Sequence record: OQ603353.1
Reading direction: 5' to 3' (one strand)
DNA length: 64,000 nucleotides
The position numbers and the translations under genes are program-made. A model generated the notes under the pieces. The model saw nothing but the letters and a program-made list of their open reading frames with translations, was not told where the DNA came from and searched no databases. How positions within the stretch are numbered: position 1 is the first letter of the stretch; every line of letters begins with the position of its first letter. Below are positions 112 through 63,283 of the stretch, piece by piece.

Positions 112-669
<558 letters not shown>

Positions 670-2621: not shown

Positions 2622-3082
2622 GCGTGTACCGTAGCACGAAAACATGGGGCCATGAACGAGGCTTTAGCTGTGCCTTCCGACAGTGGCGTGCTCACGACAG
2701 CCATTGCCGATTGGTTCACGGGTACGCCCTTGGCTTCAAGTTTGTCTTCGAGACAGACCAGCTGGACGAACGCAATTGGGTAGTGGACTTCGGGGGCCTT
2801 GACGACCTCAAGCAAATCCTCGCGGACAACTTCGACCACACAACCATCATCGCCGAAGACGACCCGGAACTGGAATGGTTCAGGGAAGCAGACCGCCGTG
2901 GTGTCCTGCGCCTTGTCGTATTCCCATACGCGGGTTGCGAGCGCTTCGCCGAAATGGTGTACGCTGTGACCGAACAGTGGCTAAAGGATGCAGGGTTCAG
3001 TCCTCGCTGCCGGTTGGTATCGGTAGAAGTAAGTGAGCACGGCGCAAACTCTGCGATCTATCATGGCAGTAGTCAAAGCTAA
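2618..3082 (+). CDS. queD: 6-carboxytetrahydropterin synthase (QueD/PTPS family)
   Basis: CAFRQWRAHDSHCRLVHGY, WVVDFGGL, FDHT, GCERFAE, VEVSEHGANSA. Confidence 0.93.
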   Translation: MSVYRSTKTWGHERGFSCAFRQWRAHDSHCRLVHGYALGFKFVFETDQLDERNWVVDFGGLDDLKQILADNFDHTTIIAEDDPELEWFREADRRGVLRLVVFPYAGCERFAEMVYAVTEQWLKDAGFSPRCRLVSVEVSEHGANSAIYHGSSQS

Positions 3083-15433: not shown

Positions 15434-15789
15434 TGATCGTTGGTGTAACAGGAGGGCGGGACCTAGGTGAAGAGGATAGAGCCTGGGTCTACAAGAAGCT
15501 CGACCGCTACCACAAGAAGTACCAGTTCACTCATCTTGTCCACGGAGGGGCAAGAGGGTTGGATACGTTAGCCGATCAATGGTGTGAGACGAAGCCGGGT
15601 GTGCAACCTGTGTGCTGCCGTGCCATGTGGAGTCGTGATGGCAACAAGGCAGCCGGGCCGATCAGGAATAGGGCAATGCGTCCTCTGATAGCTCGGCTCT
15701 TGTCGTTTCCCGGCGGTAACGGAACCAAGGATATGACTGACCACTGCGCACATCACGGTGTGCCAATCACAAGGATCAAAGCACCATGA
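15433..15789 (+). CDS. SLOG/YspA-like DUF2493 protein
   Basis: VGVTGGRD, LVHGGARGLDTLA, AAGPIRNRAM, FPGGNGTKDM. Confidence 0.85.
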   Translation: MIVGVTGGRDLGEEDRAWVYKKLDRYHKKYQFTHLVHGGARGLDTLADQWCETKPGVQPVCCRAMWSRDGNKAAGPIRNRAMRPLIARLLSFPGGNGTKDMTDHCAHHGVPITRIKAP

Positions 15790-18804: not shown

Positions 18805-19259
18805 TGCCATTTTGGCATCATCTGGACAACTACCGGAGTTTAGGGCAGTAAAGACCAGTATTTTCGTGCGAACACCTTGCAGACCCCTAGGGCTTCCCCT
18901 TTGAACGAGTGGAGGCCCTTCTTTTTGACCGAAATATGACTGATTGACCATCTGAATGACCGGAGTTGCCATTTTGGCACCTTATAGTAGAGGCCGAAAG
19001 AAGATTTTCTTCTCGGACCTCGGGCATCCCCTCATGCGTTGCCAAAATGGCACCGTCGGAGTGTCGGAATACACCCGAAAATGGCCCTTGACGTGGTACC
19101 CCACAGGGCGAAAAATTTAGGGGCTCCAGGATGCGTCTAGACACCCGATCCTTGCCAAGGATTACCGAGTTTGACGCAAGGATTTTTCAAATATTTTGAG
19201 TCTGAGCAGGCCAATCCTGTAAATATTGGGTGTGGGCAAAACAGGGTGCCAAAATGGCA
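18805..19259. repeat. cluster of four TGCCA-N3-TGGCA palindromes
   Basis: Copies at 18805-18817, 18967-18979, 19040-19052 and 19247-19259. Confidence 0.9.
19218..19225 (+). promoter_or_regulatory. candidate phage promoter TGTAAATA
   Basis: AATCCTGTAAATA upstream of the gene starting at 19347. Confidence 0.6.
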
Positions 19260-19346
19260 ACATCACTGCCCTGTCCGAACAATTTTTCGACGCAGAACGC
19301 ACCCTCCGTCCGAGGGTATGAATTTTTTGATGGCCGAGGGTCAAAA

Positions 19347-19877
19347 ATGACCAAAATTTCAGATATTTTACCCGACGACGCAGTGACCGAAGTGGTGCGA
19401 TCTGTTTTGCATCGCCTAGTGGTGGTCCGAGGCCTTTCCCTCTCCGAAATCATCAGGGACAACAGCGATATTGATCCTGACCTGTTCGGGGCACGACTTT
19501 TCTCAGTGATCGCCAACACCGAGGTGCAAATTCCTGTCTCACCGAAGGGGACCGAGGCAGCGCTCTCAGATTCAAGGGAGGACCGAGGGTACAAGAGGGG
19601 TGTGCGCGATTATGTGCTGTTCCGGCAGGACAAGAGTGGCAGGGGACGTCGGGAGTACCTGCACGTGAGCACGAATCTGTACGGGTGGCAGCAGTCCATA
19701 CCCCAGGATGCGCTGACTCACTTTGAGAGCGTAGAGGCGGTCCAGAATCGGGTGAACGGGATGCGACTCGATCCCGGCTACTTCTACTACACCGCTACCG
19801 CTGACGATCTGATAGACGAAGCGCTGCATAAGGTAGGGATAGTCCAGCATGCTATCGAGGTGGCCGAAGATGTTTAG
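19347..19877 (+). CDS. hypothetical protein
   Basis: Start trimmed to ATG 19347, past the motif block. Confidence 0.65.
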   Translation: MTKISDILPDDAVTEVVRSVLHRLVVVRGLSLSEIIRDNSDIDPDLFGARLFSVIANTEVQIPVSPKGTEAALSDSREDRGYKRGVRDYVLFRQDKSGRGRREYLHVSTNLYGWQQSIPQDALTHFESVEAVQNRVNGMRLDPGYFYYTATADDLIDEALHKVGIVQHAIEVAEDV

Positions 19878-19989
19878 GATCAGCCCAGCCCTGTATGGGG
19901 TCAAGGGATGGACCGAGTTGGCTTCCGCTGTGGGAGTGAGGAAACGTGGGAAGAGTAAATACACTAGGAAGAGGGGTAAGCGGAAATGA
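19870..19989 (+). CDS. 39-aa peptide with basic C-tail RKRGKSKYTRKRGKRK
   Basis: Translated by hand; ATGA overlap with the next gene; tail shared with 35594-35764. Confidence 0.7.
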   Translation: MFRISPALYGVKGWTELASAVGVRKRGKSKYTRKRGKRK

Positions 19990-20486
19990 AGTTGAGTGAC
20001 ATTCTGACTGAGCGGGATTTGATTGATCTGGCAGATGAGGTGTCGTCCGGTAACTACGAATCCCTGCTGGAGAAGCTGGGTGGGTATGAGTTTGAACCAC
20101 CCTATATGATCGGGGTAGCGGTAGAGGCACACAAGCTTGCAACGTGCGCTACCGAGGATGATCCTCCCCTGATATGGGATAGCGTGTCGCCGGAGTCGAT
20201 GCAGAAGTTAGGTGAGGGGCTGGCCGATAGTATGCACACCCTGCCCATGCAGCCGGGTACCACACGCAGGTTGCTAGGCAAGAGGGAGACAGACTGGAAC
20301 CTACGAGAGGCCGTGAGCTTGGCTGAGGCTCGGGTGTTCCGTAGCATGTCAGGACTCAGGGCAGTACGGGTTGATGAGAATGGTGATCCCCTGCGAGGAC
20401 CAGCATACGAGGCGGGCGAGTGGAGTCTGCGTAACTGGGAAGCAATCAAGCGTGACCAACAAGGAGAAAGCAATGCTACAGATTGA
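19986..20486 (+). CDS. hypothetical protein
   Basis: ORF track; coupled to the upstream peptide. Confidence 0.65.
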   Translation: MKLSDILTERDLIDLADEVSSGNYESLLEKLGGYEFEPPYMIGVAVEAHKLATCATEDDPPLIWDSVSPESMQKLGEGLADSMHTLPMQPGTTRRLLGKRETDWNLREAVSLAEARVFRSMSGLRAVRVDENGDPLRGPAYEAGEWSLRNWEAIKRDQQGESNATD

Positions 20487-22089
20487 CCGTGACCGATATG
20501 ATGAGGAAGCTTACGTGCCTCTGACGCTGGGTCAGATCATCAAGTGGGTGGAGACACAGCCGGAAGGGCAATGCTTCCATGGCCTGCACATGCCGCACAG
20601 CTACCGGGGCTACTACCAATGCTTGGCGTTCACCCCTAGCCCGGAGACTCTCAGCAAGGCAGAACTGCTGCATAGGCTTCGGGAAGGCGTAGGCGTATAC
20701 GACGGGTACAAGGGTGGTGTCTACCGCATGGGCCTCGACACCGAGTGCTACCTTGCTCGATACGGTGAGACGGGTGCGCCCATGTGCATGCGGTGGCTGG
20801 AGGATGAACTTCGGGTAACGGTGACGATGGTGCCGGAGAGTACAGCGCGCGCATCACGGGATGCCGTAGCCGATGTACAATCAGAGACAGCGGTGGAGGA
20901 AGCACGGGATGCGCGCGCTGTACCCGTAGACCCTGTGTCCACCCATCACGTGCATCGGGGTGCAGAGTCCCTGCCCTGCTACTGTGCACGCACGACAGAC
21001 CACCCGAACGGCCATGAGCTACTGTGGGAGAACCCCGCACCTCATGCTGCTGGCGCACCGTCGCCCTCTGCCCAAATGAAGATCAGTAGCCTGCCTGCTG
21101 ACAAGATGGACCCGGTGGATCACCTCGAATCCCTGCCTCCCGATATGCGTCTTGGTTCTGCTGACTATCTCGACTACCTTGACTCGGATACGCCGATGAC
21201 CACCAGTGATCCCAACGATTTGGTTGAACGTTGCAACAAGTACATGGCGCTGCGTGAGCGAGCCGAACAGGGCTTGTATGCGGTGGCGCGCGCTGCACAG
21301 GAAATGCGGGCGGTGTCTCAGCGTGGTAAGGACGCAGCCATTGTCCTTACCGAGACTCTCCCATCTGAGCAGATGCGTCAAAGCATTCGGTCTACCGTTG
21401 CGTTCTTCGCTGCACAGGAGGAGCGCATGACCGACATTCTCAACACCCTCTCGGCAGCGCGCGACAATGCTTTGCAGAAGGGTGACTGCCGGAGGATTGA
21501 TGGCCAGTGGTACGTCTGCACTGATCCCGATATGGCACGCTTCGTTACCTTTGATGGGATGGAGACTCCGTGCACCAACCTCAAGCGAGCGTATGATGCT
21601 CTTCGGTTCTACGTTGATGCCAGCGACACTGAGTTGGAGGAACGTGGGATTGATCGCGCTGAGGCACTGCGTCTTGCCCGTGATGCTGAGCGCGCGCTGC
21701 ACAACCACCTGAGCAAGGACCCAGATGACGTGTGGTGGGCCGAACCCCTGCCGCTTACTGCTATCGACCACGGTGCTGTCGTTCCCCTTGATACCGAATG
21801 GCAGGTGACCACCAATCCGGTGCCTGCCGATGCTGATCTTGGTGGCGAGGATGGTCCCGTGTGGGCTGTGATGCTGCCGCTGTCCATCGGGCCGAACGCC
21901 TACTACGATCCTTCCCCGCTGATCCAGCGTTTCAACCGAGGCTCCCACGTCCACTTCTTCCGTAAGGCTACGGCCACGAAGATCCGCGATCACTTCAACG
22001 CAATGGTGCGCACGAGCACCGAACAGCCGTTGGCCGAGATCGTTCACCACACCCTACAGCGACACGTACCCGGAGACAACAATGCTTGA
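20473..22089 (+). CDS. large mosaic hypothetical protein
   Basis: AAGGAG RBS; several unrelated-looking segments in one frame. Confidence 0.65.
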   Translation: MLQIDRDRYDEEAYVPLTLGQIIKWVETQPEGQCFHGLHMPHSYRGYYQCLAFTPSPETLSKAELLHRLREGVGVYDGYKGGVYRMGLDTECYLARYGETGAPMCMRWLEDELRVTVTMVPESTARASRDAVADVQSETAVEEARDARAVPVDPVSTHHVHRGAESLPCYCARTTDHPNGHELLWENPAPHAAGAPSPSAQMKISSLPADKMDPVDHLESLPPDMRLGSADYLDYLDSDTPMTTSDPNDLVERCNKYMALRERAEQGLYAVARAAQEMRAVSQRGKDAAIVLTETLPSEQMRQSIRSTVAFFAAQEERMTDILNTLSAARDNALQKGDCRRIDGQWYVCTDPDMARFVTFDGMETPCTNLKRAYDALRFYVDASDTELEERGIDRAEALRLARDAERALHNHLSKDPDDVWWAEPLPLTAIDHGAVVPLDTEWQVTTNPVPADADLGGEDGPVWAVMLPLSIGPNAYYDPSPLIQRFNRGSHVHFFRKATATKIRDHFNAMVRTSTEQPLAEIVHHTLQRHVPGDNNA

Positions 22090-22456
22090 CCTTAGCAATG
22101 ACGAACTGGCCAATGCCCTCAACAGCATCAACATGCAGAACTTCACTCTGTCCTCGGGCACAGAGGCGATGCAGGGTATCGCACGTGGACTCCGCGCTTT
22201 CAGCTCTACGCGTAGCGCCCTGCATGAAATGCACCTCACCACCGAAGCTCTGCACGCTGAGTGGACGAAGAAGCTGGAAGAGGCCAGCCATGAACAGCGC
22301 GCTCACGTACTGGCGATCCTGAGTTCCCTTGCACAACAGCGCGCGGGTCTGCACAAAGCACTGACCACCATCACGCACACCGAAGACATGATCCTCTCCA
22401 TCGCCACTGAACTGACGGGCGTTACCTTCCCCGCGGAGGCCGCAGAATGGGTCTGA
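22082..22456 (+). CDS. hypothetical coiled-coil protein
   Basis: Coupled ORF. Confidence 0.6.
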   Translation: MLDLSNDELANALNSINMQNFTLSSGTEAMQGIARGLRAFSSTRSALHEMHLTTEALHAEWTKKLEEASHEQRAHVLAILSSLAQQRAGLHKALTTITHTEDMILSIATELTGVTFPAEAAEWV

Positions 22457-22605
22457 GTGATTGCCCTAAGTGTTGGGACACGCCGTGTGGCTGCGGCCAC
22501 CAGTACGAACAGTGGACAGAAGAACGTCTGCGTGACCACATCAAGATGCTGGAAATGGTGCTTGCCAAGAAGCAGGCGCAACGATACAAAGGAGAGTCCA
22601 AGTGA
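22447..22605 (+). CDS. 52-aa Cys-rich protein (MGLSDCPKCWDTPCGCG...)
   Basis: Translated by hand; fills the gap, with GTGA overlap to the next gene. Confidence 0.65.
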   Translation: MGLSDCPKCWDTPCGCGHQYEQWTEERLRDHIKMLEMVLAKKQAQRYKGESK

Positions 22606-22874
22606 GCATGTATCGAGTTGTGTTGCAGCCTGTATGCAGGGCGTTCGGCGGTTGGGTGAGCGACCCGGATCGTGTTGAGCGCAGTCACCTGATGAACACC
22701 ACGGATACACTGGCGGTGTTGCAGTTTGACGACAACGGCGAATCCACCGGCAAAACGTTGTCCCAGACCTACCTGTTCCTGTGCCTCGGTGACATTGTGG
22801 AACTCCACGACGACCAAGGCAGCATCGGACACCACCGCGTACTGGACGTGATGGATGCGGAGGTAGCGCAATGA
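22602..22874 (+). CDS. hypothetical protein
   Basis: AAGGAG upstream. Confidence 0.6.
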   Translation: MSMYRVVLQPVCRAFGGWVSDPDRVERSHLMNTTDTLAVLQFDDNGESTGKTLSQTYLFLCLGDIVELHDDQGSIGHHRVLDVMDAEVAQ

Positions 22875-23033
22875 ACGTGGTACAACATCGGGAAGCTCAA
22901 CCACCATGAAGGCGAGGTCATCCTGCATCCCGGCACCAAGTACAAGGTATCGCACCACTCCCAGCACACTGATCCCGACAGCGGGCACATCTACCACGTG
23001 GTCCACCTGACCGCACACAGTCCGAAGCACTAA
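22875..23033 (+). pseudogene. start-less 3' remnant of a His-rich ADP-ribosyltransferase
   Basis: 52 codons TWYNIGKLNHHEGEVILHPGTKYKVSHH...; the ExE-VILH-G-K-KV segment matches the C-terminus of the ART at 25511. Confidence 0.7.
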
Positions 23034-23039
23034 TCCGAA

Positions 23040-23073
23040 GGGCCTATCCTGCTAACGTGGGGTAGGCCCTTTT
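23040..23073 (+). terminator. Rho-independent terminator
   Basis: GGGCCTATCC / GGGTAGGCCC stem plus TTTT. Confidence 0.8.
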
Positions 23074-23157
23074 GCATAGCCCGGCGATAGGTTCCAATTT
23101 CGTGCAAGTTGTCCCTGAATCGAACCTGAACGGCAGCTGAACGAAAATGAACAGTGG

Positions 23158-23186
23158 TTGACAGGGGGATAGGGTCCAGGCATAAT
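23158..23186 (+). promoter_or_regulatory. host sigma70-type promoter
   Basis: TTGACA (23158-63), 17-nt spacer, CATAAT (23181-86). Confidence 0.85.
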
Positions 23187-23268
23187 AGGCTTGTGGTAGG
23201 GAAACAAGGGCGTCAGCCCACCGGGACCCACCTATCGGAACCCCTAGTCAGATACCTCGGAGAATCTC

Positions 23269-25425
23269 ATGAAGCGCAAGTCCCCTCGGAACCGTCCCCT
23301 GATCGCTGAACTGATGCCGGTACGCGCTGCCGCCGAGCGCATGGACCTTCGGACCGCCAACCTGTCCAGCCACCTGATGACGGTGGAGTTTCTGGAGCAG
23401 GACGACTCCCAGGTTATCCTGACCTTCATGCTGAACAAGAATGACCAGCTGGTGGCCTCGGTGGAACTGGAACGTGCGGGTCATGTGCAGTGCGCCACCC
23501 CTTACCTGCGCGGTGCCATGCTTCGGAACAGCCTGAGCGCCACGCTTGACGACTATGACGTGGAGCGCGACCGCATCGCCTCGGTCATCGCCTTCCTCGA
23601 CAGCATCGTCTAACCCTTCGGAGCCCCTCATGAACGCCAACGTCCTCGCCCTGATCGTACAGACCGCCGTTGAAATGGGACTGGTGGTCCAGCATACTGC
23701 CAACGACATTACTGTCCTGTTTGATGAATCGGAGATGGAAGCGGCAGGCATGTTGGTGCAAGCTGCTCCGGCCCTTCGATTTGTGTATGGCCCTGTCCTG
23801 ACCGCCTACCCCGAAGCTCACATGGGATACCACGAAGGGGAGTTGCAGGCCATCGGGTTCGCCACCAAGGGCGTTCGGGGCGACGAACTGCGCGACTGCA
23901 TCGAAAAGATGAAGACCCACTTCAAGCCCGAAGCCGTCATGCCCCTCTTTACCTTCCTCGGCCTGCTGAACCGCAACGCCGCCAACCACTAAGGAACCGA
24001 CCATGAAGATCAAGACCATCCCGCTGACCGCCGTTGTTATCTCGGCCATCCTTTGGGCCGTCGCCATGATTGGCAGCGCCCCGTTCGTCGGCCCCACCCT
24101 TTCCACCACCGTCCGCGCCTAACCCACCCAGCATCCAAAGGAATGACCATGAGCAAGTACCCCGCAATCGCCAACCTCGATCACGTCATCACTCAGACCG
24201 TCCAGTTCGGGCTGGATGACTACGCGGGCCAGACGGATCACGTGCCCGAGGCCGTCGCCCACAGCATCGCCTACATCGCCAGCTGCTTGATGGCCCAGCA
24301 CACCACCAATGGTTACCTCGGCGTGCCCACCGACGCCGCCCTGAACGCCCTGCAAATCACCACGGTCCACATGAGCTACGAAGACCGACTGGCGCTGACC
24401 CGCGCCTTCATTGCAGAATACGGCGGCGTCAAGTGATCCGCATCCTCGCCCTGCTGATCGTCACCCTGTCCACCATCCTGACCTACCGGAACTAACATGA
24501 ACGCCAAGACCAAGACCACTTCGGACGTCAACGCACAGCGCGATGCCATGCAGAAAGCCAATGCGGCCGAGCAATTCCGTCGTCACTCCCTGCTGCACAC
24601 CATGACGGCCGACGGTCCCCTGTTCGTCCCCCTCGACAAGGCCCACACCTTCGGCCTCGCCCCTGCTGGCCGTGGCGGTGCTGCCTACCTTGATGCACTG
24701 GAAGCCCTCGGCCTCATGGCTGCACTGGTGCCCCACGCAACCAACCCGGACACGTGGGGCGGCTACCTCGTCTGCCGGTCCAGCTGGGCACGCGAGCAAG
24801 TGGGTCCGGACGACGCCAAGTTCCTCTGACCCACCCTGTAAACCTAGATTAGACCCTGCCGCCTTCGGGCGGCTTTGTCGTGTCTGCCCTCCCGACCTAA
24901 AGGAACCATCATGAACAAGCTCTCCGCATTCTTCTCCAACCTGATCGCCTCTTCCGCTACCGACATTGACGGGTTCTCCATCAAGGTCAAAGGTGAGCGC
25001 ACGCTGGAACTGCTGGATGAAGGGCGTGCCGCTGTGGCCGACCCTGAGTTCGTGCAGCGCCACGGCAACTACTGGCACTTCGTCGAACAGAAGCATCCCG
25101 AGTACCTGCTGGTCAGCACGGGCCGACTGGTCATCGTCAAGGTACTCCCCGACAACGCCATCGACGCAGCCGCATGAGTACCGACACCCCGTTGCCCAAC
25201 GTCGAGGCCGTGACCCACAACACCTTCGTGGTGCGCACGCAAGCAGGCTTCCGACAGGCCCTCAAAGCATGGGGCGGTAAGGTAAAGGGCGACACGATTC
25301 ACGACTGGCCCACCGCCTATCCGAGTCTTGTCACGTTCACCGTCGGCTACTGCGGGTATCATTACGTGCAGTGTACTGCCATCCACCTCAACACACTGAT
25401 GCCCGTAGTGGGCCGGCACGCATAA
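23269..25425 (+). other. putative early operon of small genes (23269-23613, 23630-23992, 24003-24122, 24149-24436, 24433-24495, 24497-24829, 24911-25177, 25174-25425)
   Basis: Follows the sigma70 promoter; strong C-ending codon bias; AAGGA RBSs. Confidence 0.7.
24858..24876 (+). terminator. GCCGCC-TTCG-GGCGGC hairpin, probable terminator
   Basis: UUCG loop with short T-tract. Confidence 0.6.
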
Positions 25426-25475
25426 GGAAATCCCATGCCCGACGTTACCCTGCACCTGTGCATCATCTGAGTCCT

Positions 25476-25485
25476 CTAATTTCAG
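25476..25485 (+). promoter_or_regulatory. candidate late promoter CTAATTTCAG
   Basis: Identical 10-mer 23-25 nt upstream of both His-rich genes. Confidence 0.55.
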
Positions 25486-25510
25486 GTGTCTTCCCCTAAG
25501 CAGAGAAACC

Positions 25511-26299
25511 ATGAGAGTCCTGTCTACCGTAGGGTCCAACAAGTTCGTCTGGACCGATCATCACCTAGACTACACCGCACCCGAAGACGATTCGCTATCT
25601 AGTGAGACTGCTTCCTCCGAAGAACACGCTCATGCGTTGAAACGTACTTCCTTACATCCCGAAGACCAAAAAGGGCACAAGGCACACGTAACTCGGGCAC
25701 GCCAAACATCCGAACACGTTGGCCATGCAGTAGATCACTACAGAAGTATCGGACACAACGATTTTAACCGAGAACTCCGCCATCCCTCCCACAAGGGTAA
25801 GATCAAAGGCAACGGTGACTACAACTTCACCGACCATTCGCTACATGATCTGCATAAAGGATTGGGGCACGCTACCAGTTATCAGCTGAAACACAAGACC
25901 GCTGTGTACCGTGGGGTGGGCGAAGCCGCCCACAAGATCAAGGCGCTCAAGAAGGGAGACACCTTCACTGACCACGGGTACACCAGTACCAGCCATAGCC
26001 CCTCAGTAGCCATTTCTTCCTTCGGTCATAGCGAGCACACGGGTACGCATCGAGAGCATCACGTCGTCAAGATTCATTTGCCCAAAGGCTCCAAGATTAT
26101 GCACGTACCTCACCACGTTGATGATGGCCTTACCCGGCATGAGGCAGAAACGGTGCTGCACCACGGTAACAAGTTCAAGGTCTTGGGTCACAGCGTCCAC
26201 GATCTACCGGGTAGTCCGTCCGGACACTCTTCCTCATTCGATAGCACCAAGCACCGGGTGCACGTAACCCACGTCAAGCTAGTAAAGCAACGCAAATGA
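25511..26299 (+). CDS. His-rich ADP-ribosyltransferase (R-S-E clade, VIP2/Alt-like)
   Basis: YRSIGHNDFNRELR, VYRG, GDTFTDHGYTSTS, HEAETVL; 39 of 262 residues are His (hand count). Confidence 0.88.
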   Translation: MRVLSTVGSNKFVWTDHHLDYTAPEDDSLSSETASSEEHAHALKRTSLHPEDQKGHKAHVTRARQTSEHVGHAVDHYRSIGHNDFNRELRHPSHKGKIKGNGDYNFTDHSLHDLHKGLGHATSYQLKHKTAVYRGVGEAAHKIKALKKGDTFTDHGYTSTSHSPSVAISSFGHSEHTGTHREHHVVKIHLPKGSKIMHVPHHVDDGLTRHEAETVLHHGNKFKVLGHSVHDLPGSPSGHSSSFDSTKHRVHVTHVKLVKQRK

Positions 26300-26306
26300 G
26301 CGACTC

Positions 26307-26328
26307 AGGCATCCGAAAGGGTGCCTTT
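26307..26328 (+). terminator. Rho-independent terminator
   Basis: AGGCATCC-GAAA-GGGTGCCT plus TT. Confidence 0.7.
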
Positions 26329-26355
26329 GTCGTTTCTGCGCTCCCGAGTCGAGGG

Positions 26356-26379
26356 TGCCATTTTGGCATCCTGTAAATA
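26356..26379 (+). promoter_or_regulatory. TGCCA-TTT-TGGCA plus TGTAAATA composite site
   Basis: Palindrome 3 nt before the promoter motif, then a GGAGG RBS. Confidence 0.7.
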
Positions 26380-26492
26380 TAGGGACAAAGGAGGCGCTAT
26401 GCCCCTCAAAGAACGGGTCCAACGGGGTGGCCCTTTTATCCCCGACTTCGTAGACGTTCGCTACATCACCCATAGCCCAACAAGGAAGCCCC

Positions 26493-29400
26493 ATGAGCCC
26501 GAAGCTCTGCATCATGAACGACACCCACAACCAGCAGTCGGCTGTGATCGTCACCATCCAGAAAGACGCGATTGACCACACGATAAAGTTTGCCTACGAG
26601 GGTGATCCGGAGGGCCCTCGTTTCCGCCTGCCCACCGATCGGGGTAGCCTGATGCGCCTGCGTGACCTGATCGACAGCGTGCTTGATCCGAGCGTGGTTC
26701 CTGTCAACACCCTGCGTCAGCTGGCCGACCGTTGGGCAGCTGATCGTGACTACAAGGGCAGCCCGGTTGACGACATTCGCGCGCTGATTGGCGACACGCA
26801 AGATTCAGCACCCACCCTCGATCCCAAGTATCAGACGGCGTTGAAGTTTGCTATAGGTCATCTGGACATGAGTGACCAACCCGAGTACGGACAGCTGCAA
26901 GAACTGTTGGCCATGACCGAGCGTGGGAAAGGTGCCTCCAACCCGTGCACGCACTACGAGGACACCACGACCGACTGCCACGTAGGACCGAACTGCATCT
27001 GCCAACACAAGGATTAACCATGAAACTTTCCCCAGCTACGGCCGATGCAATAGCCGACTTTATTCGCCTGCCCATTTCCAGCACGTCCCCTTGGGACCGG
27101 GTATCCTTCCACATAAACAAGACGCTCAAGGCCACTGCCACGTGTGGCACTTCGGTGCTGACAATTGTCAGCACAGACGAACACGACTTTGCCCAGCAGT
27201 TGCGCTTGGTGGTCGCTGGTGCTCGCCGCATGCAGGTAAAGGAAGATGAGGAAGGCTGTGAGTGCAGGGACGGTGAAGGATGCTCCGTGTGCTCTACGTT
27301 GCCACTCGCCAGTGCTCGTAAGGCGTGCAAGCGCGTGCGTAGGACTCCCGAAGAGGCAGTGCTAGAGTGTGACGAGTGCGATGCCGATCCGGGTGTGCCA
27401 TGTGACTGTGGTACCGAGAATGAGGACAACGCCCCTCTAGGGGCCAACTAGAAGCGAGCGCCGTGATGATCGCATTGTTCAAGATCGTAGTGACCTTGGC
27501 GTTGATCGGGGAAGCACTATGTACCGCGTGGGCCGCGTGGAGTGATCGAGCTTTGATGGGACGCACGTACACAATCCTCACCATCATCGCCGTGTTGTTT
27601 GCGGCCCTCGCAGTAGGCGCCATTACCTACCGCACTCTACAGTTGGATGGGACACTATCATGAACCTTGACGCACTCAGCGTTCTCTTCATCGTGGTATT
27701 CGTCCTGCTGTCGTTTGTGTTCCTGTGGCTGGGACGTGGTGCATGGCGTGGTCGTGCGCGTACCGGCATCGCCCCTGTCTTCGCCAGCGCCTTTGGTTTC
27801 GGTGCCTGCTACACTGGCATCCTCCTTCTACTGGAAAGGCTATGACCAACAAGACCTTCAACATCAAGACCGAGTTCTTCACCAAGCTGTGCATCTACCT
27901 GATGCTAGGTGGCCTAGTTACTGGTGTGATCGAACGCCAGTACGCCAAGGAGTGCCCCGGTGAGGCCGGTGGCATGTTGACCATCACCGAAGCTGGGATC
28001 GTCAGCGCCACGTGGCCTGCGTTGCTAGGCGCTACGGTGTTCCATCTACTGACCAAAGATGGGGCCGACCGTCCCACCCAATGCAAGAGCGCCCGAGGTG
28101 ATCTATGACCTTCGATCTGACCATCCAACCAATCTCGGGTTGGAGCGAAGAAAGGAACTGCTGGCTGCACCCGCCTAGCTTCGCCAAGGTGTACGAAGCC
28201 AGCCTCGATCCCGACCACCTGTTGCTGCGTGTGGTTCCCCACCGTCACAGCCATAGCGTCAGCTACCTGAGCGTCAAGGCCCAACACTTGGCGGTCAACG
28301 ACGTGGTAGTGTGGCCGTTCCCTACCGGCGAGCAGTTCGGGATCATCCACCACGTACCGAGTGTGATCTAATGGAAGAAGCCGTTAGCATGCTATACACC
28401 CACATAGACTGTCCGTATTGTGACAACACCTTTGAGGTCGAAGGCGATCAACGAGGTTCCGTAGTCACGTGCGATCATTGCGATAAGGAAATGTTGGTAT
28501 GACCAACCACGAACAAGCAATCACCGACGCACTGTGGAGAGACAATGGACACAATTGACCTGAGCAAACCCACACGTGTGGTCACTGGGACCGTGACTAT
28601 GCCTGCACCTGCCTTCCAGCAGATTCCGAAGGCCAACACGTACACTCGACTGTACACCCCAGCTGAAACCCTCAGTGACATGGGCCAAGAGTTTGACGCG
28701 GCGCTGCATGCTGCTGTCCAACCACTGGTTGCCACCTTTATTGAGCGTGGGGCCGACAGTCACGACATGGAAGCGTTGGCCGTCGCTATGGTGACCAGCG
28801 AGATTGCCAGTCTGCGCATGGCCCGGCAGCTGCGACGCCGCAACGAAGAACGCGAGGCAGAGCGGTTGCAGTTGGAGACCGACATTTTGCAGTATGGGGA
28901 TCGTGCCTACGAACTGTGGTGCGAACACCAGCACAATGCAGTCAAGCGAGAGAACCGTCCAACTTACTGGAGCCAGCTGCACCCACAACACAAAGCCGCG
29001 TGGGTCATTCGGGCCAAGCGCGAGGCAGAACAGACAGGATGCGAGGAGGCCCACGATGAATGATTGCCCGCTGTGCAAAGCAACTCGACCCACCTGCCCA
29101 TACGGTCCCGTGGTGGCCACCAACGTGAAGACCGGCAAGAAGGTATGGCTGTCTAGCGCGTTGGTCCAGAAGATCATGAAGCTTGTGCCCAATAAGGAGG
29201 CTACCGCATGACCGTCAAGCTCACAGGATGGACCAAGGCCGATGGGCACACGTTGTGGATGACACAAGATGGCGAACCTGTGTTCCGTGAAGGCCACCTG
29301 CCTGACCTCGGCCCCAACAAAGCTGTGCATCTTACGGGCAAGATGCCGCTGCTGGACGATCCTCGCTACCTCAAATACCCAGGTTACGAATACCTTGAGG

Positions 29401-29609
29401 CCATCAGCGACGATCAAACCCAGTACCTGATCGAGCCCAAGCGCAACACTCGCCTGCGGATACGTAGGAGCCCGACGTTGGTAGGTGGGTGGACTATGGA
29501 CATTCGGTCGTATGGTGAATGGGTTGTCTACCTTCCAGACGGTAGCAGCAAGACCATGATCCAAGATACGCTCGACAAAATCATTCGCTACGGTCCGGTG
29601 GGCGAATGA
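26493..29609 (+). other. run of small hypothetical genes (26493-27017, ~27020-27451, 27463-27663, 27660-27845, 27842-28108, 28105-28371, 28371-28502, 28545-29063, 29056-29211, 29208-29609), several with TM helices or CxxC pairs
   Basis: ATGA-coupled ORFs. Confidence 0.6.
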
Positions 29610-30385
29610 GGATTTTAGCCAAGTACGGCACCGGGAGTTCAGCTGTCTACATTGCAGTGGATGAGAGCACTCCCGATGTTGAGTACATCGTAACCTGCGC
29701 CGTAGAGCTACAGATTGGTCAGCAAGTTGAGGCGTCCAGTTGTTCGCTGCACACAGGGGTGCACACGCACCTTCCGTCTTACCTGTCGTTCCCATACCTG
29801 TACTCAGCCATGTCCGGTTTGTGGATGCTGTGCCGCCGTCAAAGCAATAGGCGTGCGCTGGTGCTGGGTTTAGGTGGCGGCAATGCCTCGCGTTACATTC
29901 GCTACACGTGGCCCGATGTAGCCCTAGTGTCTGTCGAAGCAAGTCCCGAAATGATCGCGGTGGCAAAGCTGTGGCCTGACGTCGGACCAGTCATTAAGGG
30001 CGATGCAGTGCAAGTGGTCAAGCGTACCGAAGCTGGGTACCTTGATTTCGTGCTGGTGGACTGCTATCCCTTCGAGAACAACACGATAGGCCAGCGGTTC
30101 TTTTCAACCGAGTTCCTGCGAGAGCTACGTAGTGTGTTGACCGACGACGGGATCGTGGCTTTCAACTTCATTGATGACGTGCCCCAGCTACCCGTAGCGG
30201 AGGTTGGGTTCAATGGAGGTGTGTTGGTGCGAAGCCCTGCGCGGTTACGGGAATCAAACAAGGTGGTGATGCTGACCAAGGCGCCGCTTGATCCCAACGA
30301 GTTTGTTACCGAGTGTCATTCATCCAATCCAGCTTACGCTTTGTCGCGGCAGCTGACTGACTTTACCTTTGAGGCATACCCATGA
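29606..30385 (+). CDS. spermidine-synthase-like SAM-dependent transferase
   Basis: ALVLGLGGG, VSVEASPEMI, GDA, VLVDCY, GIVAFN. Confidence 0.8.
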   Translation: MRILAKYGTGSSAVYIAVDESTPDVEYIVTCAVELQIGQQVEASSCSLHTGVHTHLPSYLSFPYLYSAMSGLWMLCRRQSNRRALVLGLGGGNASRYIRYTWPDVALVSVEASPEMIAVAKLWPDVGPVIKGDAVQVVKRTEAGYLDFVLVDCYPFENNTIGQRFFSTEFLRELRSVLTDDGIVAFNFIDDVPQLPVAEVGFNGGVLVRSPARLRESNKVVMLTKAPLDPNEFVTECHSSNPAYALSRQLTDFTFEAYP

Positions 30386-32914
30386 AAATCATTTTGCAAA
30401 TCCGTTGGCCCAGCGATGCTCCTGCCGCAGATGCAGCAGACGTGCCCCGTATCACCGACCGCTTGTTCAATCTCACGCGTCCGATTCTGGAAGAGTACGA
30501 CGCAGGCAACTACAATCTGGATGACGTGATGACTGCGCTGGAGAACGCAGGGTTCCTCAACCCGAGTCCCTACCGTCGCGCCGGTGTTGTCTCGCTCATC
30601 TGCCCAGCCCACGCTTACGAAGGTGCGGCCGATCTTGTCAGTACGGTCATGAAGAGTATTGCTGGGGGTACCGAGAGTGCAATCATTGTGTTCACCAATC
30701 CGGACATTCGCATTGGTGCAGAGGTTGGCATGTTCGTGGCTGGTCCTCAGTTCACACTGCTCAACGTGAGCTTCGACCCCAGCAAGTTCCTGTAACCAAG
30801 GAGACCGACGATGACTTGCCACTGTGGATCGTATTCGTGTATGGACTGCATCTGTCCAGATACCTGCGGTCTATGCGACCGAAAGTGGCACAAGTGCCAG
30901 TGTAGCACAGAGCCGCGTGAGTACGAGTTGGAGAACGGCCGCAAGTACCGAGCGGTCTACACCAAGACGCCGTTTATCGACGGCGAGTATCCGAAGGGCG
31001 GCATCGTCGTGCACGTGTGGAGCACCGAATGGTGCTACCTTGCCAACTGCGAATCGTGGGAGGCAGTGGACGAAATGATGCGGTTGCTGAAACGGCTGCC
31101 CGAACGCAAGGAGAGAAATGATGGGCAAATGGATTGACAAGATGCAGGTAGTGCATGGCACGACCATAGCCGAGTACAAAGCAATCTTGCTAGAGCGGGT
31201 ACGCCACCCTTCCAAGATGTACCGAGACTTGGGATGCAAGCCTGTTGTCAAGCCTATCTACCTGTACGAACTGACCGACGGTACGATTTTGAACACAGGG
31301 TATTATCCATTGTGCCGTTCGCTACGCACCATGCTGGGTGCCTCGATCAAGAGCGAGGAATTTTGGTACGGCGACCCGAGTGTAACGCCGCTCCTGTTCG
31401 CGCATGGAGCAATCGTCTTTCCTCAACGTGTGGAGAAGACCGCATGAATGGTACTGGCCTTGGCCCTCCACGTCCACGCGTGGTGACACTGTCCGAGTTG
31501 TACGGTAAGCCCTACCCTTTGATTCTTTCGATAGATCGCCTCCTTGAGGGCAACCACTTACCGATGAGTAAGCCCCTCAGTAGAGACGAAATCCTCAACA
31601 CCGATTGGACCCTCGTAGTTCAAACCTTTGCGCTGATTGCGTTCGGTCCAGAGGATATGGTAGCTGAGTTTGAACGTGCTAGGACCGAGGTCAAGCGTCC
31701 GCTGCACCCACGCACGTTCAAGAAGAACCGACTGGTCGAAGGTGTTTCCCTAGAGGGCACCTTCCTGATCCAAGGGCCTTTGCGTGGTTACGCACCCGGT
31801 GACAACGTGTGGCAACTCAGCGTTGATTACGCCGTTAACAGGAATCGAAAATGACACACATTGTCGCACCAAAGCCGAAGGAACGTTGGCTCAAGGAACA
31901 GACCACCAAGTTCCGTCCCCTCTACAACAAGCGCACCAAGCTTGGTTCGGGAAACAAGCTCACGTTGCTCGAAGAGTGGTGGACGGTTGAGAACACCGAT
32001 CACGTCGTAGTGGATGATGACGGCAAGCCCGTTCGCTTCCACTTCTTGCCGATGGCACAAATCTGCGCCGACTCTGTGAACGGTCCTACCGTTTCCCTGC
32101 AAGAGCAGACGCGCCAGATTCTACAGGACGTGGTGGACCGAAAGATCGACAACAACAAAGCAGTGGCTTTGTTGTTTGCAGTCTATGGGATTGACCTATG
32201 AAGAAGCTACTTAGGATCGTAGATGATTGGTGGTTGTTCATCGGCCGTGCTGCCATAGTGGTGTGCGTTACGTTCGTTGTCGGCATGATTGTATGGATCA
32301 ACGTGCTTACGATCAAGTCCAATCGTCACGCTAAAGAATGGTGCCCTCGACACAACGGCGTGCTGATCGAAGCAGGTTCCGGTAACGTCAAGTGCGTCAA
32401 GAGCATCGAATACTTCACCGAAGAGGAACTCAAGGCGCCATGACACCCAAGACCTTCCACATACAGGCAGGATACACCATTACCCACGGCGATCTGGAGG
32501 TAAAGAAAAACCGAGTCCGCTGGCGAGGTAAGACTATGGTGTACCTGGGAATTATGGAGCACGTTATCCAGCGTAACGTTCGTAAACTACTGCTGGCAGC
32601 GTAAAGGAGTCATGATGCACATTGTAGATTCGGGAGCCTTCACGATGGCGCTCAATGTACTGCGCCGTGCAGGTAAGACCGAAGTAGCTGACGAACTAGA
32701 GAAGGCCAGCAGGACGCTGCACCCACGTGACCTCGCTGAGGCAATGGACCATGTGCTACAGACCAAGACCGAAGACGTGATGGACGGCGGCTACTACGAA
32801 TCGCCCAACACTTCGTTAGGCGATGATGCACTGGAACAAATGACCACTGTGATCGACGGCAATCTCTGCTTGGTTCCGTTTGCTGGTCGCGTGCTCAACT
32901 CAATCAAACCATAA
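30382..32914 (+). other. run of hypothetical genes (30382-30795, 30811-31137, 31118-31447, ~31444-31854, 31851-32201, 32198-32443, 32440-32604, 32612-32914)
   Basis: Coupled ORFs without recognisable motifs. Confidence 0.6.
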
Positions 32915-32924
32915 GGAAAGACTC

Positions 32925-33245
32925 ATGCCATACTCTACCCGTAATCGTGGCCTCTACATCATCATCGCGTTGCTCACGGGCATGCTGGGGTTCCATAACT
33001 TCTACGCAGGTCACTTGAAGAAGGGTGGTCTCCAGTTCTTGGCCACCGTGGTCAGCATCCTGATTATCCCCGTGACTGCCATGCTGTCTGTCCTGATTTC
33101 TGGCGGCGATGACAGCGGTGGAGCATCCAAGCTGGTGATGTTCGCTGTAGTGGCTGCGCCTGTGCTCGCAGTGTGCAATGCAATCAGCGTGATCCTGGAC
33201 ATCGTTGAAACCAAGACCGATGGCTATGGCGATTTGATGCGTTGA
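32925..33245 (+). CDS. TM2-domain membrane protein
   Basis: IALLTGMLGFHNFYAGHLKKGGLQ plus further hydrophobic helices. Confidence 0.8.
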   Translation: MPYSTRNRGLYIIIALLTGMLGFHNFYAGHLKKGGLQFLATVVSILIIPVTAMLSVLISGGDDSGGASKLVMFAVVAAPVLAVCNAISVILDIVETKTDGYGDLMR

Positions 33246-33276
33246 AGAAGAGGCCCCAATTGGGGCCTCTTCTTTT
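33245..33276 (+). terminator. terminator (perfect 30-bp palindrome)
   Basis: AAGAAGAGGCCCCAATTGGGGCCTCTTCTT at 33245-33274, then TT. Confidence 0.8.
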
Positions 33277-33327
33277 GCCGGAAATAAGGAGAGATTGAAG
33301 ACCAGTTAAGGCCGAGGGCAAGCCTGC

Positions 33328-33337
33328 CTAATTTCAG
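33328..33337 (+). promoter_or_regulatory. candidate late promoter CTAATTTCAG
   Basis: Second copy, 23 nt before ATG 33361. Confidence 0.55.
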
Positions 33338-33360
33338 ATGACCTATGTAGAGCATCTAAT

Positions 33361-34116
33361 ATGCGCATCCTCAAAGCAACAAACAGTGCCGACAAGTCTA
33401 CGCCAGAGCCCAAGTATGAAGGCATTAGTGCTGGGCTGCGTCGCCTCGAACTTTCGTACATTGATGACACGGGTGTCGCCAAGCCAAACAGTGCGCCTAC
33501 TGTGCATCAGAAAAATCTGGAGAACGTGGCCTACAAGAATCCGAAGAAAGCATACAACAGCTTGGTCAAGGATTTGCGTGGGGCCAAGCATTTCAAAAAG
33601 GACTACGCGTACATCAAGGTGAAGAATACTGGTCATGGTGGCGGGCATCGTCTCCATATCATGCACGTTCCAACCCTGCACAAGGAACTGCACAGGATGC
33701 ACGCAGCGTACAAGTCCGGCGGGGAGACTGCTCTCAAGAAAGCTGTCCTCGAACACGCTAGATCAAAGTCGGGGCACGGACATGCAGGCCATGTCCGAAT
33801 GGTAGGCGATCAGGTTGGCATGGCAACGTTGCACAAGGAACACACAAAGAAGGGAGTGATGCACGATCTGTATCACCACCTTGTTACCAAGGAAGGCAAG
33901 AAGCTCCGAAGCTCCTCGCAATCCAAGGGCGCTCGGGCGCTGTGGACCAAGCTGTCCAAGCACAAGGACTTGCAGGTTCACGCGCTAGTCAACCACGGCG
34001 ACGGGGTAGTCAAGCTCAAGCCCGGATTGACACACGCATCTGGCCATAGCGTCTATGACAAGAAACACAAGCCCAACAAAGACGTGTACGCTCTGCACCT
34101 CAGCAAGAAGAAGTAG
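33361..34116 (+). CDS. His/Lys-rich protein with probable C-terminal GNAT-like domain
   Basis: LHKEHTKKGVMHDLYHHL...LRSSSQSKGARALWTKL resembles the rG.G.a..lY / S..QS.ga..lW pattern of phage GNATs; 25 of 251 residues are His. Confidence 0.6.
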   Translation: MRILKATNSADKSTPEPKYEGISAGLRRLELSYIDDTGVAKPNSAPTVHQKNLENVAYKNPKKAYNSLVKDLRGAKHFKKDYAYIKVKNTGHGGGHRLHIMHVPTLHKELHRMHAAYKSGGETALKKAVLEHARSKSGHGHAGHVRMVGDQVGMATLHKEHTKKGVMHDLYHHLVTKEGKKLRSSSQSKGARALWTKLSKHKDLQVHALVNHGDGVVKLKPGLTHASGHSVYDKKHKPNKDVYALHLSKKK

Positions 34117-34121
34117 CCCAG

Positions 34122-34153
34122 AAAGGCCCCTAGAAATAGGGGCCTTTTCTTTT
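34122..34153 (+). terminator. Rho-independent terminator
   Basis: AAAGGCCCCTA-GAAA-TAGGGGCCTTT plus T-tract. Confidence 0.85.
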
Positions 34154-34172
34154 GCCGGAAATAAGGATGGGT

Positions 34173-34197
34173 TGCCAAAATGGCAATCCTGTAAATA
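34173..34197 (+). promoter_or_regulatory. TGCCA-AAA-TGGCA plus TGTAAATA composite site
   Basis: Same architecture as 26356 and 41224. Confidence 0.7.
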
Positions 34198-34217
34198 TAG
34201 GATACAAGGAGGACGAT

Positions 34218-35594
34218 ATGATCCCAGACTTTGACCTGTCCAAAGCAGTGCGCCAAACCAAGTTCGTGGGCCCCAACTCGAAGACAGGTAACTGCACTGA
34301 GGCGGCTATTGCCACCCTGCTGCAAATTCCCCTAAGCGCCGTTCCCGAATTCAATCGTAGCGGAGACGACGCATCTGACTTTTGGGAGAGCGTTGAAAGC
34401 TTCTTGGTAGAGCACGGGCTCTACATCAAGTACACCACCAAGCACAAACAAGGTGTGTATCTCGTAAGCGGCCCTACGGTAAGGGGCCGGGGTCACCACA
34501 CTGTCGTCTACAAGGATGGACAGTTGGCGTGGGACCCGCATCCCTCCGACGCAGGCGTCACCGAAGACGTGTGGTGCCTACACCTTCAAGACACGGATCC
34601 ATACGCATGAGTACCGACTGGAGTAAAGCAATGGTTATTGACTGGGAACTGCTTGCCCTTCGTATGCTTGCAGCCAACCAACTTGGCATCCGCATTGAGC
34701 AAAGCGACGGTCATCGTTGGATCATCGAAGACCTGTGTTCTGAATTCTGCCTGCACCTGTTCGGGGAGCCTGTACCCCTCAACGTGGTGGACCCTGAGCG
34801 TGAAGCCTACCAAAAGGTATACGGTTCCTATAGCGCTGCCCTCGATTTGATTGACGAACGGTTAGTTGCCAAGGGCCACAAGATTCTGGCAGAGCAATTC
34901 GATCACATCAATTACCACAACGACCTGTCAAACATCTTCGGAGACGGCGTGCAATGATTTTCAATGAGGATGAACTCAACCGAATAGCCGATCAGCTTGT
35001 GGGCAAGACCGCTGAGATTTGGGATGCACGTACGATACGCGAAGTAGCCCGAATAGGCGAAGTTCCCTTCTACCTGAAAGGCACCGTGGAGCAAATGACT
35101 GTAAGCGCTCACGTAGGCAACATTGTCGCACGTGACGAACAGGACCAACCCATCTACCTGACGATCAAGGGCTGCATTTGCTGGGAGGGTCGATACACTC
35201 TGCGCGCCGACCTGAACTACGAACCGTACATGGGCTCTGTGGGAGCCGTCCCTGTTGACATTGAATGGAACCAACCATGAGCAAGATCAAATTCCCGCAG
35301 GGCATGCGGGCCTATCGTCCACCGATGCACGCACCCCGACACGCCGTTACGGCACTGACCCTCGATGTTGAGGAATTCATTGCATTCCTACGCGAGCAGA
35401 AGTCCGACGTGGTACGCCTCAACGTGTTGGCATCCAAGGGCTCGGGTCATCATTACGTCTGTGTCAACGAGTGGCGACCGGGCAACCCTGTGCAGGAAGA
35501 GGCACGTGCGAAGCGTGCGCCTAAGCCGCAGCCGGATCATCATGATTACGAGGATCACAGCGTTCCACTCAATGACGAGGATATTCCTTTCTGA
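34218..35594 (+). other. four hypothetical genes (34218-34610, 34607-34957, 34954-35280, 35277-35594)
   Basis: AAGGAGG RBS and ATGA coupling; the first has NC..A and GHH..V, a peptidase-like Cys/His pattern (weak). Confidence 0.62.
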
Positions 35595-35764
35595 TGCTAG
35601 GACCTACTGATACCATCACAGAGTTCCCTGTGCCACGGCCCCGAACGTATCCCTCTGATGGAATGTTTACATGGGAAGGGCATCGCATCCACACTCACAG
35701 CAAGCCCGAGCCGCGCAGGCGGGGCAAGAGTAAGTACACCCGAAAGAAGGGGAAGCGCAAATGA
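35594..35764 (+). CDS. 56-aa peptide with basic C-tail RRRGKSKYTRKKGKRK
   Basis: Translated by hand; TGATG overlap upstream and ATGA overlap downstream. Confidence 0.75.
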   Translation: MLGPTDTITEFPVPRPRTYPSDGMFTWEGHRIHTHSKPEPRRRGKSKYTRKKGKRK

Positions 35765-63151: not shown

Positions 63152-63194
63152 GTGAAACAGTTTCCTTATAAGGATGAATGGTTGGGTAGTACGT

Positions 63195-63276: not shown

Positions 63277-63283
63277 TATCCCT

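Follow-up and report, generated by a model that had tools for sequence, protein, structure and literature searches.

Xanthomonas phage Ep026, a 227-kb jumbo phage, has two micro-protein genes, ORF1 and ORF2, in its first 64 kb. Their products have unrelated N-terminal halves and end in the same polycationic tail of 16 residues. We refer to this entire 64-kb stretch of DNA as the window. Our preferred reading is that both are genuine accessory genes for disordered proteins, in which the shared tail binds a polyanion, probably nucleic acid, and the N-terminal halves differ in role. We put the probability of this reading at roughly one half. Comparative sequence alone establishes the two micro-genes, and a 16-residue module under strong selection. 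Note that gene callers mostly miss micro-proteins of under 60 residues. Ep026 belongs to a new and isolated genus, which also includes PhiXhv-12 and PhiXhv-15, along with PhiXhv-16. The features discussed are listed in Table 1.

Table 1. Positions of the micro-protein genes, their tails, and nearby features in the window.
Feature	Position	Strand	Remarks
Gene 5' of ORF1	19230..19877	+	215 aa; no family match; stop overlaps ORF1 start
Shine-Dalgarno-like GAGGT	19857..19861	+	8 nt ahead of ORF1 ATG
ORF1 micro-protein gene	19870..19989	+	39 aa; 40-41 aa in relatives
ORF1 basic tail	19939..19986	+	RKRGKSKYTRKRGKRK; peptide identical in all variants
ORF1 tail codons forming Shine-Dalgarno-like GAGGGG and ATGA overlap for next gene	19971..19989	+	
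Gene 3' of ORF1	19986..20486	+	166 aa; no family match; ATGA-coupled
Neighbouring gene	20371-22089		572 aa; matches PHROG family of uncharacterised function
Spermidine-synthase-like gene	29606-30385		
Gene 5' of ORF2	35265..35594	+	109 aa; no family match; TGATG overlap with ORF2
ORF2 micro-protein gene	35594..35764	+	56 aa
ORF2 basic tail	35714..35761	+	RRRGKSKYTRKKGKRK; 14/16 identical to ORF1 tail
ORF2 tail codons forming Shine-Dalgarno-like AAGGGG and ATGA overlap for next gene	35747..35764	+	
Gene 3' of ORF2	35761..35961	+	66 aa; no family match; ATGA-coupled

Both micro-ORFs are coding sequences

A preliminary description of the window reported the two frames as unannotated and their shared tail as under purifying selection. 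Both are present, with translations that agree. The term unannotated holds only for Ep026, because its record has no annotation whatever. In the relatives it fails: the three PhiXhv genomes each have ORF1 as an annotated CDS of 41 aa, and PhiXhv-16 has an annotation for ORF2, which is uncalled in the other two annotated relatives and in large protein collections. Coding status is thus backed by other annotators, who called both ORFs as CDS.

When orthologues are compared, each ORF behaves like a coding sequence constrained by purifying selection, the tests being made with a small evolutionary sample of two to four sequence variants per gene, all from one genus. The ORF1 frame is intact in each of four distinct nucleotide variants. 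Within its tail, four codons vary and no residue changes; one serine is kept through a switch between AGT and TCC. Translation of ORF1 likely starts at 19870, because conservation in this frame does not extend back to the in-frame ATG upstream, at 19849. For ORF2, comparison with PhiXhv-16 gives 13 differences, 11 synonymous and two replacement (pS 0.28, pN 0.016, Fisher p 1.7e-6). Codon position 3 holds 11 of the 13 (p 2e-4). Between the same two phages, the flanking gene ends at this locus diverge, with indels.

Both micro-ORFs lie in a long co-directional cluster of replication genes and small uncharacterised genes. Coupling by ATGA is frequent in Ep026: plus-strand ORFs of at least 60 aa form 42 pairs of this type. 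Profile scans of six neighbours matched one, a 572-aa protein, to a PHROG family (Table 1). The sole phage tRNA is for Asn and, this being the only one, a tie between the micro-proteins and phage tRNA was rejected.

The tail is conserved as a peptide

The claimed identity of 14 residues in 16 between the tails was borne out, and the two replacements are conservative K/R changes. The PhiXhv-16 ORF2 tail, RKRGKSKYTRKKGKRK, is closer still, matching the ORF1 tail at 15 of 16 positions. It is the peptide, and not the DNA, that is conserved, as had been suggested. Of the 14 identical residues, 8 are encoded by different codons; the nucleotides agree at 35/48 positions, in runs of no more than 8 nt. 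Synonymous sites are randomised between the tails (Nei-Gojobori pS 0.95, pN 0.08, Fisher p 5.5e-8). A chance origin of the match is excluded. When the 16 residues were permuted, 1 in 2 million permutations attained 14/16. The placement of G, S, Y, T, and G among the basic residues is one arrangement in 262,080. Similarly, a degenerate DNA pattern of the tail has two matches in the window, compared with none in 100 shuffles.

The tail is the sole similarity between the two loci. The N-terminal halves are unrelated, as described previously: their best local alignment is equalled by 54-61% of shuffles, and homology was rejected as being at chance level. Neither the upstream genes nor the downstream genes are paralogous, and so a larger duplicated region was also rejected. 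We likewise rejected frameshift fusion to the upstream gene, since the relative frames differ, with overlaps of just 35 and 19 nt. Whole-genome scans of Ep026 and PhiXhv-16 found exactly two tail copies per genome, with no third copy in either at up to 7 mismatches.

The tail has 11 K/R residues in 16, a charge of +11, two glycines, and no hydrophobic residues. AlphaFold2 models, made from single sequences, are of low confidence and essentially disordered (pTM 0.14 and 0.20). The ORF2 model, with a pTM of 0.14, has no secondary structure.

The 3' tail codons also serve the next gene

Both ORFs end in AAATGA, the stop overlapping the ATG of the next gene, which confirms the coupling described earlier. 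Shine-Dalgarno-like sites and overlap coupling are found on both sides of each micro-ORF. The last nine codons of ORF1 show no nucleotide variation in any of the four variants, and the last six of ORF2 show none between Ep026 and PhiXhv-16. For both tails pooled, 0 of the 15 last codons vary, compared with 9 of the 17 first (p 9e-4). The last six to nine tail codons also provide the next gene with its ribosome-binding site and ATGA restart.

These invariant codons suggest another explanation, in which the DNA or RNA itself is conserved, for example as a recombination linker, an RNA structure, or a site for ribosome binding or stand-by, and the ORFs are incidental. Each tail is nucleotide-invariant in its 3' third, which contains the Shine-Dalgarno-like site of the next gene, and the tracts are 75-81% purine. 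However, the 5' two-thirds differ between the two copies at nearly all synonymous sites, orthologues show synonymous variation there, and the shared run noted above is short. There is no stable RNA fold (z-scores of 0.00 and -0.41 for the two ORFs), and promoter and terminator signals are no higher than in shuffles. The substitution pattern largely refutes a DNA or RNA unit, and we consider it highly improbable.

A more distant relative, L012, has no ORF1, yet both flanking genes are present. The gene upstream of ORF1 is 85% identical to its L012 homologue, and the downstream gene 41%. In L012, GAGGT likewise precedes the ATG of the downstream gene's homologue. The indel, an insertion or a deletion, is the entire ORF1 micro-gene (122 nt in PhiXhv-12), with AATGA bounding it on either side. 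It is positioned after the GAGGT ribosome-binding site and before the ATG of the next gene. Since the tail codons carry a ribosome-binding site and an ATGA restart for that gene, the micro-gene can lie between the binding site and the ATG of a resident gene without silencing it. The indel shows how a micro-gene can be gained or lost at a point between ribosome-binding site and start codon, with the next gene still coupled. The absence of ORF1 from L012 as a whole-micro-gene indel, and the DNA-invariant last six to nine tail codons, are new here.

Conservation up to the stop of a short coupled ORF, as found here, is a mark of arrest and leader peptides. The tail might work in cis, with the last 16 residues, in the exit tunnel, tuning termination-reinitiation at the ATGA and so downstream output. 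At both loci, the conserved residues directly precede a stop that overlaps the next start, and ORF1 has taken over the downstream gene's ribosome-binding site and start position. The ORF1 tail is also enriched in rare codons, AGG being three of its five Arg codons compared with 7% in long genes (p 0.003). Rare codons are not enriched in the ORF2 tail, however, and the two downstream genes are unrelated to each other. SecM, TnaC, and MifM show the same residue-level conservation up to the stop, ahead of a coupled gene. Unlike these, the micro-proteins match no known arrest motif, and have no evident sensing function. Furthermore, the 40-residue N-terminal half of ORF2, which would be outside the tunnel, is conserved as strictly as the tail, with seven synonymous and no replacement changes relative to PhiXhv-16 in residues 1-39. 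This half is entirely kept, which fits a protein acting in trans. We regard action in cis as unlikely.

In the collections searched, the tail occurs in one genus

The tail was previously proposed to be portable. In the collections searched, it was found only within the Ep026/PhiXhv genus, and portability across phages is not supported. Matches by tblastn, in 50,697 phage records, are confined to the five genomes of this genus. When 1.84 billion representatives were searched exhaustively with HMMER, a two-sequence profile gave one match only; this is spurious, being a repeat protein aligned to the N-terminal part alone. A word search of 5.8 billion proteins detected no homologue of ORF1 or ORF2. 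No match to a degenerate DNA pattern encoding RGKSKYTRKxGK was found in IMG/VR, in JGI metagenomes, or in GTDB genomes. Relatives sought via the neighbouring genes were absent from IMG/VR and JGI metagenomes, and extra contigs were obtained only from Logan assemblies. Pfam, PHROG, NCBIfam, and PADLOC scans identified no family for either micro-protein, and none of these searches gave a homologue of known function. As judged from these collections, the tail is at present an orphan module of one genus.

Possible targets of the tail

We infer that both ORFs are translated in vivo. The shared tail, with its fixed G, S, Y, T, and G positions, most likely anchors the protein to a polyanionic target. 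This is probably nucleic acid, whether DNA or RNA (ribosomal RNA included). The variable N-terminal half would act as an adaptor, giving each micro-protein its own role. Equally, the polycationic tail may instead bind membranes, polyphosphate, or acidic proteins. With respect to the last of these, the phage has genes of its own for long poly-Asp and poly-Glu proteins. ORF1 and ORF2 make a clean pair with which to study the action of a short polycationic tail in jumbo phage infection.

In other large phages, basic internal proteins neutralise charge in the capsid. The micro-proteins could be packaged internal peptides of this kind, loaded into the capsid with the DNA. Their charge, +11 in 16 residues, is extreme, and the spermidine-synthase-like gene indicates that the phage invests in polycations. 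However, the micro-genes are set in a region of replication genes and small accessory genes, a long way from the structural module, located at ~142-200 kb in PhiXhv-16. We find packaging quite improbable.

The preliminary description likened the tail to that of ArfA. This was not borne out. At E up to 10, no Pfam, NCBIfam, PHROG, PADLOC, or PDB entry was matched by the whole proteins or by the tails alone; the PDB library searched includes ArfA-ribosome entries, and the tail queries were 22 residues. ArfA (Pfam PF03889) and BrfA, which recruit RF2 to ribosomes whose mRNA channel is empty, are produced from truncated non-stop mRNA. No signal for such expression was found in the micro-genes, both of which end in a normal in-frame TGA, preceded by neither hairpin nor terminator. 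A KH motif, common to ArfA and BrfA, contacts the mRNA entry channel (PMC8012679). The motif is absent here: ORF1 has zero histidine, and ORF2 has GH, IH, and TH only.

In general build, the micro-proteins nevertheless resemble rescue factors. ArfA, BrfA, and ArfT likewise have 40-70 residues, a disordered positive C-tail, and differing N-terminal parts (PMC8012679); the products of ORF1 and ORF2 have 39 and 56 residues, with basic tails and variable N-terminal parts. Because rescue factors share almost no sequence, and further undiscovered examples are expected (PMC8012679), the missing similarity leaves room for an ArfA analogue. The tail could then enter the mRNA channel or bind rRNA, making these phage analogues of ArfA, BrfA, and ArfT, or plugs that stop host translation. 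The PhiXhv-16 annotation also lists translation-related genes, for CsrA and a Leu/Phe-tRNA-protein transferase. Besides the points above, the two glycines and lack of hydrophobics are probably unlike tails that turn helical in the channel. We think it improbable that the tail is a ribosome-directed module, and so that these are the first phage-encoded analogues of the ArfA/ArfT/BrfA class, or translation plugs, on a self-contained cassette. If they were, the small-rescue-factor theme would extend to phages, and the cassette, supplying on its downstream side a ribosome-binding site and restart codon of its own, could settle between any gene and its ribosome-binding site.

Resemblance to other systems

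Returning to the tail as a nucleic acid anchor, phage antiterminators of the lambda N type bear RNA-binding peptides with arginine-rich motifs. Like the micro-protein tails, these are short, disordered, and highly basic peptides, with a few fixed non-basic positions, on a disordered phage protein. Unlike them, the Ep026 motif is C-terminal, has more lysine than arginine, and has no family match. The N-terminal basic arm of homeodomains occupies the DNA minor groove. The Ultrabithorax homeodomain arm (PDB 1b8i) gave the only PDB alignment touching a tail, which is not significant (E 0.85). It shares R-x-R-G-x-x-x-Y-T-R spacing with the ORF1 tail, an analogy at most. Unlike a homeodomain, ORF1 has no three-helix domain, the protein ending after a 22-residue arm-like alignment, and ORF2 has no match. 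The AT-hook core, G-R-P, is absent from both tails, which have RGK, KGK, and zero proline, with no Pfam match.

As genes, ORF1 and ORF2 are like the small early accessory genes of T4-like and jumbo phages: short, coupled, lineage-restricted, placed among replication genes, and gained or lost from one related phage to another. Unusually for such orphans, the two have a single strictly conserved module in common.

Two micro-proteins share a basic C-terminal tail

ORF1 and ORF2 (coordinates are in the table) translate as previously quoted, and each ends AAATGA, overlapping the ATG of the next gene. Their products have a common 16-residue basic tail, in which 14 of 16 residues, and 35 of 48 bases, are identical. 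Different codons are used at 8 of the 14 identical residues; every arginine, glycine and threonine codon differs. The preliminary description held that peptide, rather than DNA, is conserved between the tails. This is supported by a pS of 0.95 versus a pN of 0.08 (Fisher p 5.5e-8), a level close to that expected from independent codon choice at this genome's usage. On permutation of the same 16 residues, a 14/16 match was reached once in 2 million attempts. As also proposed, the N-halves are no more similar than shuffled sequences. The flanking genes at the two loci are unrelated, and the tail is the sole match. Whole-genome six-frame scans of public bacteriophage records (OQ603353.1 and PV764603.1) found exactly two tail copies in Ep026 and exactly two in its relative PhiXhv-16. 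We conclude that the match is real and beyond chance, and that the selection argument is right.

Both micro-ORFs behave as coding sequence

A comparison of ORF2 in Ep026 and PhiXhv-16 gives 13 base differences, of which 11 fall at codon position 3 (p 2e-4). Eleven changes are synonymous and two are replacements (pS 0.28, pN 0.016; p 1.7e-6): P to S directly before the tail, and R to K within it. Around ORF2, the upstream gene end and downstream gene start are heavily diverged, with indels. For ORF1, there are four nucleotide variants among GenBank genomes and Logan contigs. Across these, the N-half differs by four conservative replacements and an indel of one codon, and the tail peptide is constant despite four variable codons. 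The tail serine is retained through a three-base switch (AGT/TCC). Judged from these substitution patterns, both micro-ORFs behave as coding sequence, and non-coding explanations are extremely improbable.

The sequence GAGGT is 8 nt upstream of the ORF1 ATG, and the ORF2 start overlaps the upstream stop (TGATG). In the ORF1 frame, the stretch between an in-frame ATG at 19849 and the start of ORF1 shows no conservation of residues. Hence, 19870 is the likely start. An opposite-strand ORF spans ORF1. Since substitutions follow the plus-strand frames, this is most likely spurious.

ORF1 is present or absent as a unit

Both genes flanking ORF1 have homologues (85% and 41% identity) in L012, a 4.3-kb Logan contig (SRR12874582) from a more distant relative. 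In L012, ORF1 is absent and the end of the upstream gene directly overlaps the downstream ATG. Relative to PhiXhv-12, this is an indel of 122 nt that begins at the ORF1 ATG and stops immediately short of the downstream one. AATGA borders the indel at either end, and GAGGTACC precedes it in each of the lineages. In genomes with ORF1, this micro-gene uses the start position and ribosome-binding site that belong to the downstream gene in L012, and the downstream gene is served by a ribosome-binding site inside the tail. Hence, on this alignment, ORF1 comes and goes as a unit, which the preliminary description did not include. With two lineages compared, the indel may be an insertion or a microhomology deletion.

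In PhiXhv-16, the gene directly 3' of ORF2 has a diverged start. There is also an extra downstream gene of 270 nt, found in none of Ep026, PhiXhv-12 and PhiXhv-15. Hence, the ORF2 neighbourhood is also a mosaic junction.

The final tail codons have a dual use

The final nine codons of the ORF1 tail, and final six of the ORF2 tail, are invariant at the DNA level. With the tails pooled, 0 of 15 such codons vary, versus 9 of the 17 preceding (p 9e-4). The 3' codons are AAG AGG GGT AAG CGG AAA TGA for ORF1 and AAG AAG GGG AAG CGC AAA TGA for ORF2. Both supply the ATGA overlap as well as a Shine-Dalgarno-like run that lies 8-11 nt upstream of the next start codon. Because these codons carry signals for the next gene, purely peptide-level constraint is clearest in the first ten residues (R-[KR]-R-G-K-S-K-Y-T-R). 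This dual use is also newly described here.

The tail is private to one phage genus

Searches of family libraries and PDB sequences gave no significant match, ArfA included, to either micro-protein. A review describes both ArfA and BrfA as made from non-stop mRNA, recruiting RF2, carrying a KH motif and placing a basic tail in the mRNA channel (PMC8012679). The basic tail is the one such feature found here; the KH motif and non-stop arrangement are both missing. The proposed analogy with ArfA is hence unsupported. Note that small rescue factors share almost no sequence, and more may exist (PMC8012679). A mode of action like that of ArfA is therefore less probable than it seemed, though it keeps some likelihood. 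Overall, a ribosome-directed factor is quite unlikely. The importance of the tail would rise if expression and localisation tied it to the ribosome.

The tail does not occur outside the genus among 5.8 billion clustered proteins, among 1.84 billion representatives, or in six frames of 50,697 phage genomes. A degenerate pattern had zero matches in IMG/VR, JGI metagenomes and GTDB genomes. Note that profile searches approach their scoring limit with a K/R-rich motif of 16 residues, a weakness that exact pattern searching avoids. Given its absence from all collections searched, the tail is private to this genus, and the idea that it is portable among phages was not borne out. We conclude that ORF1 and ORF2 encode a pair of orphan micro-proteins that belong to one phage genus.

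The tail as a candidate nucleic acid anchor

AlphaFold2 predicts that both micro-proteins are essentially disordered. Of the 16 tail residues, 11 are positively charged, and the tyrosine and glycines are fixed. Such charge, the fixed residues, and strict retention on two different N-halves, point to a module that docks specifically with a polyanion. The target is most likely nucleic acid. The sole PDB alignment touching the tail, to a homeodomain DNA-binding arm, is not significant (E 0.85). We favour bipartite micro-proteins, with a probability of about 0.5, in which the tail would anchor the protein to nucleic acid. The peptides might act in cis, as they emerge, in coupling to the next gene. 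This is unlikely; the whole N-half of ORF2 is strictly conserved, which argues for a trans-acting protein over a cis-acting nascent peptide. Packaged internal peptides are very unlikely.

Genomic setting

The window spans bases 1-64000 of the genome of Xanthomonas phage Ep026 (OQ603353.1), which is 227,420 bp; the record is flagged UNVERIFIED, without annotation. That the ORFs were called unannotated is an artefact of this. At both loci, Erwinia phage Ep032 is identical to Ep026, and PhiXhv-12, -15 and -16 are 91-99.9% identical. The PhiXhv phages have been described as a new jumbo-phage genus without detectable relatives (PMC13340338). The window encodes a UvsX-like recombinase, SbcCD-like nuclease subunits, a clamp loader, ribonucleotide reductase and primase. 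Between these genes is a long series of short ones that point the same way and have unknown functions; both micro-ORFs belong to it.

The synthase-like and QueD-like genes hint at polyamine synthesis and 7-deazaguanine-type chemistry. The ADP-ribosyltransferase domain protein resembles the ADP-ribosyltransferases with which T4-type phages modify host proteins. Taking PhiXhv-16 annotation as given, labels include a Leu/Phe-tRNA-protein transferase, CsrA translational regulator, DksA-like protein and sigma factor, an expression-control set unusual for a phage.

Coordinates of features in Ep026 and PhiXhv-16
Feature	Position	Strand	Remarks
ORF1	window 19870-19989	+	39 aa
ORF2	window 35594-35764	+	56 aa
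ORF spanning ORF1	window 19572-20132	-	186 aa
Gene 3' of ORF2	window 35761-35961		compared with L003 (PhiXhv-16 stretch) 2359-2831
Spermidine/spermine-synthase-like	window 29606-30385	+	Pfam PF01564, just above cut-off; PhiXhv-12 label polyamine aminopropyltransferase
QueD-like	window 2618-3082	+	per PhiXhv-12 annotation
ADP-ribosyltransferase domain	window 25511-26299	+	262 aa; Pfam PF03496, E 2e-8, above gathering score
Expression-control labels	L027 (PhiXhv-16 stretch) 14427-15260, 27204-27440, 23773-24030	-
Expression-control labels	L025 (PhiXhv-16 stretch) 15075-16091	+
Repeat-rich ORF	window 61760-63277	-	505 aa
9-nt tandem repeats	window 61764-62002		AT skew strongly negative
GAT/GAC tandem repeats	window 124-557, 388-669	+	code for poly-Asp stretch
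Lys-rich tail ORF	window 388-669	+	93 aa
Larger Lys-rich tail ORF	genome 73798-74238	-
Larger Lys-rich tail ORFs	genome 199359-202430, 223274-224986	+

The repeat-rich ORF has no Pfam match. A/K/T repeats (KAAAKK-like, similar to histone H1) abound in its N-part, and a very long poly-Glu/Asp run makes up the C-part. The 93-aa ORF ends in a Lys-rich tail, after the poly-Asp stretch, and Lys-rich tails also end three larger Ep026 ORFs.
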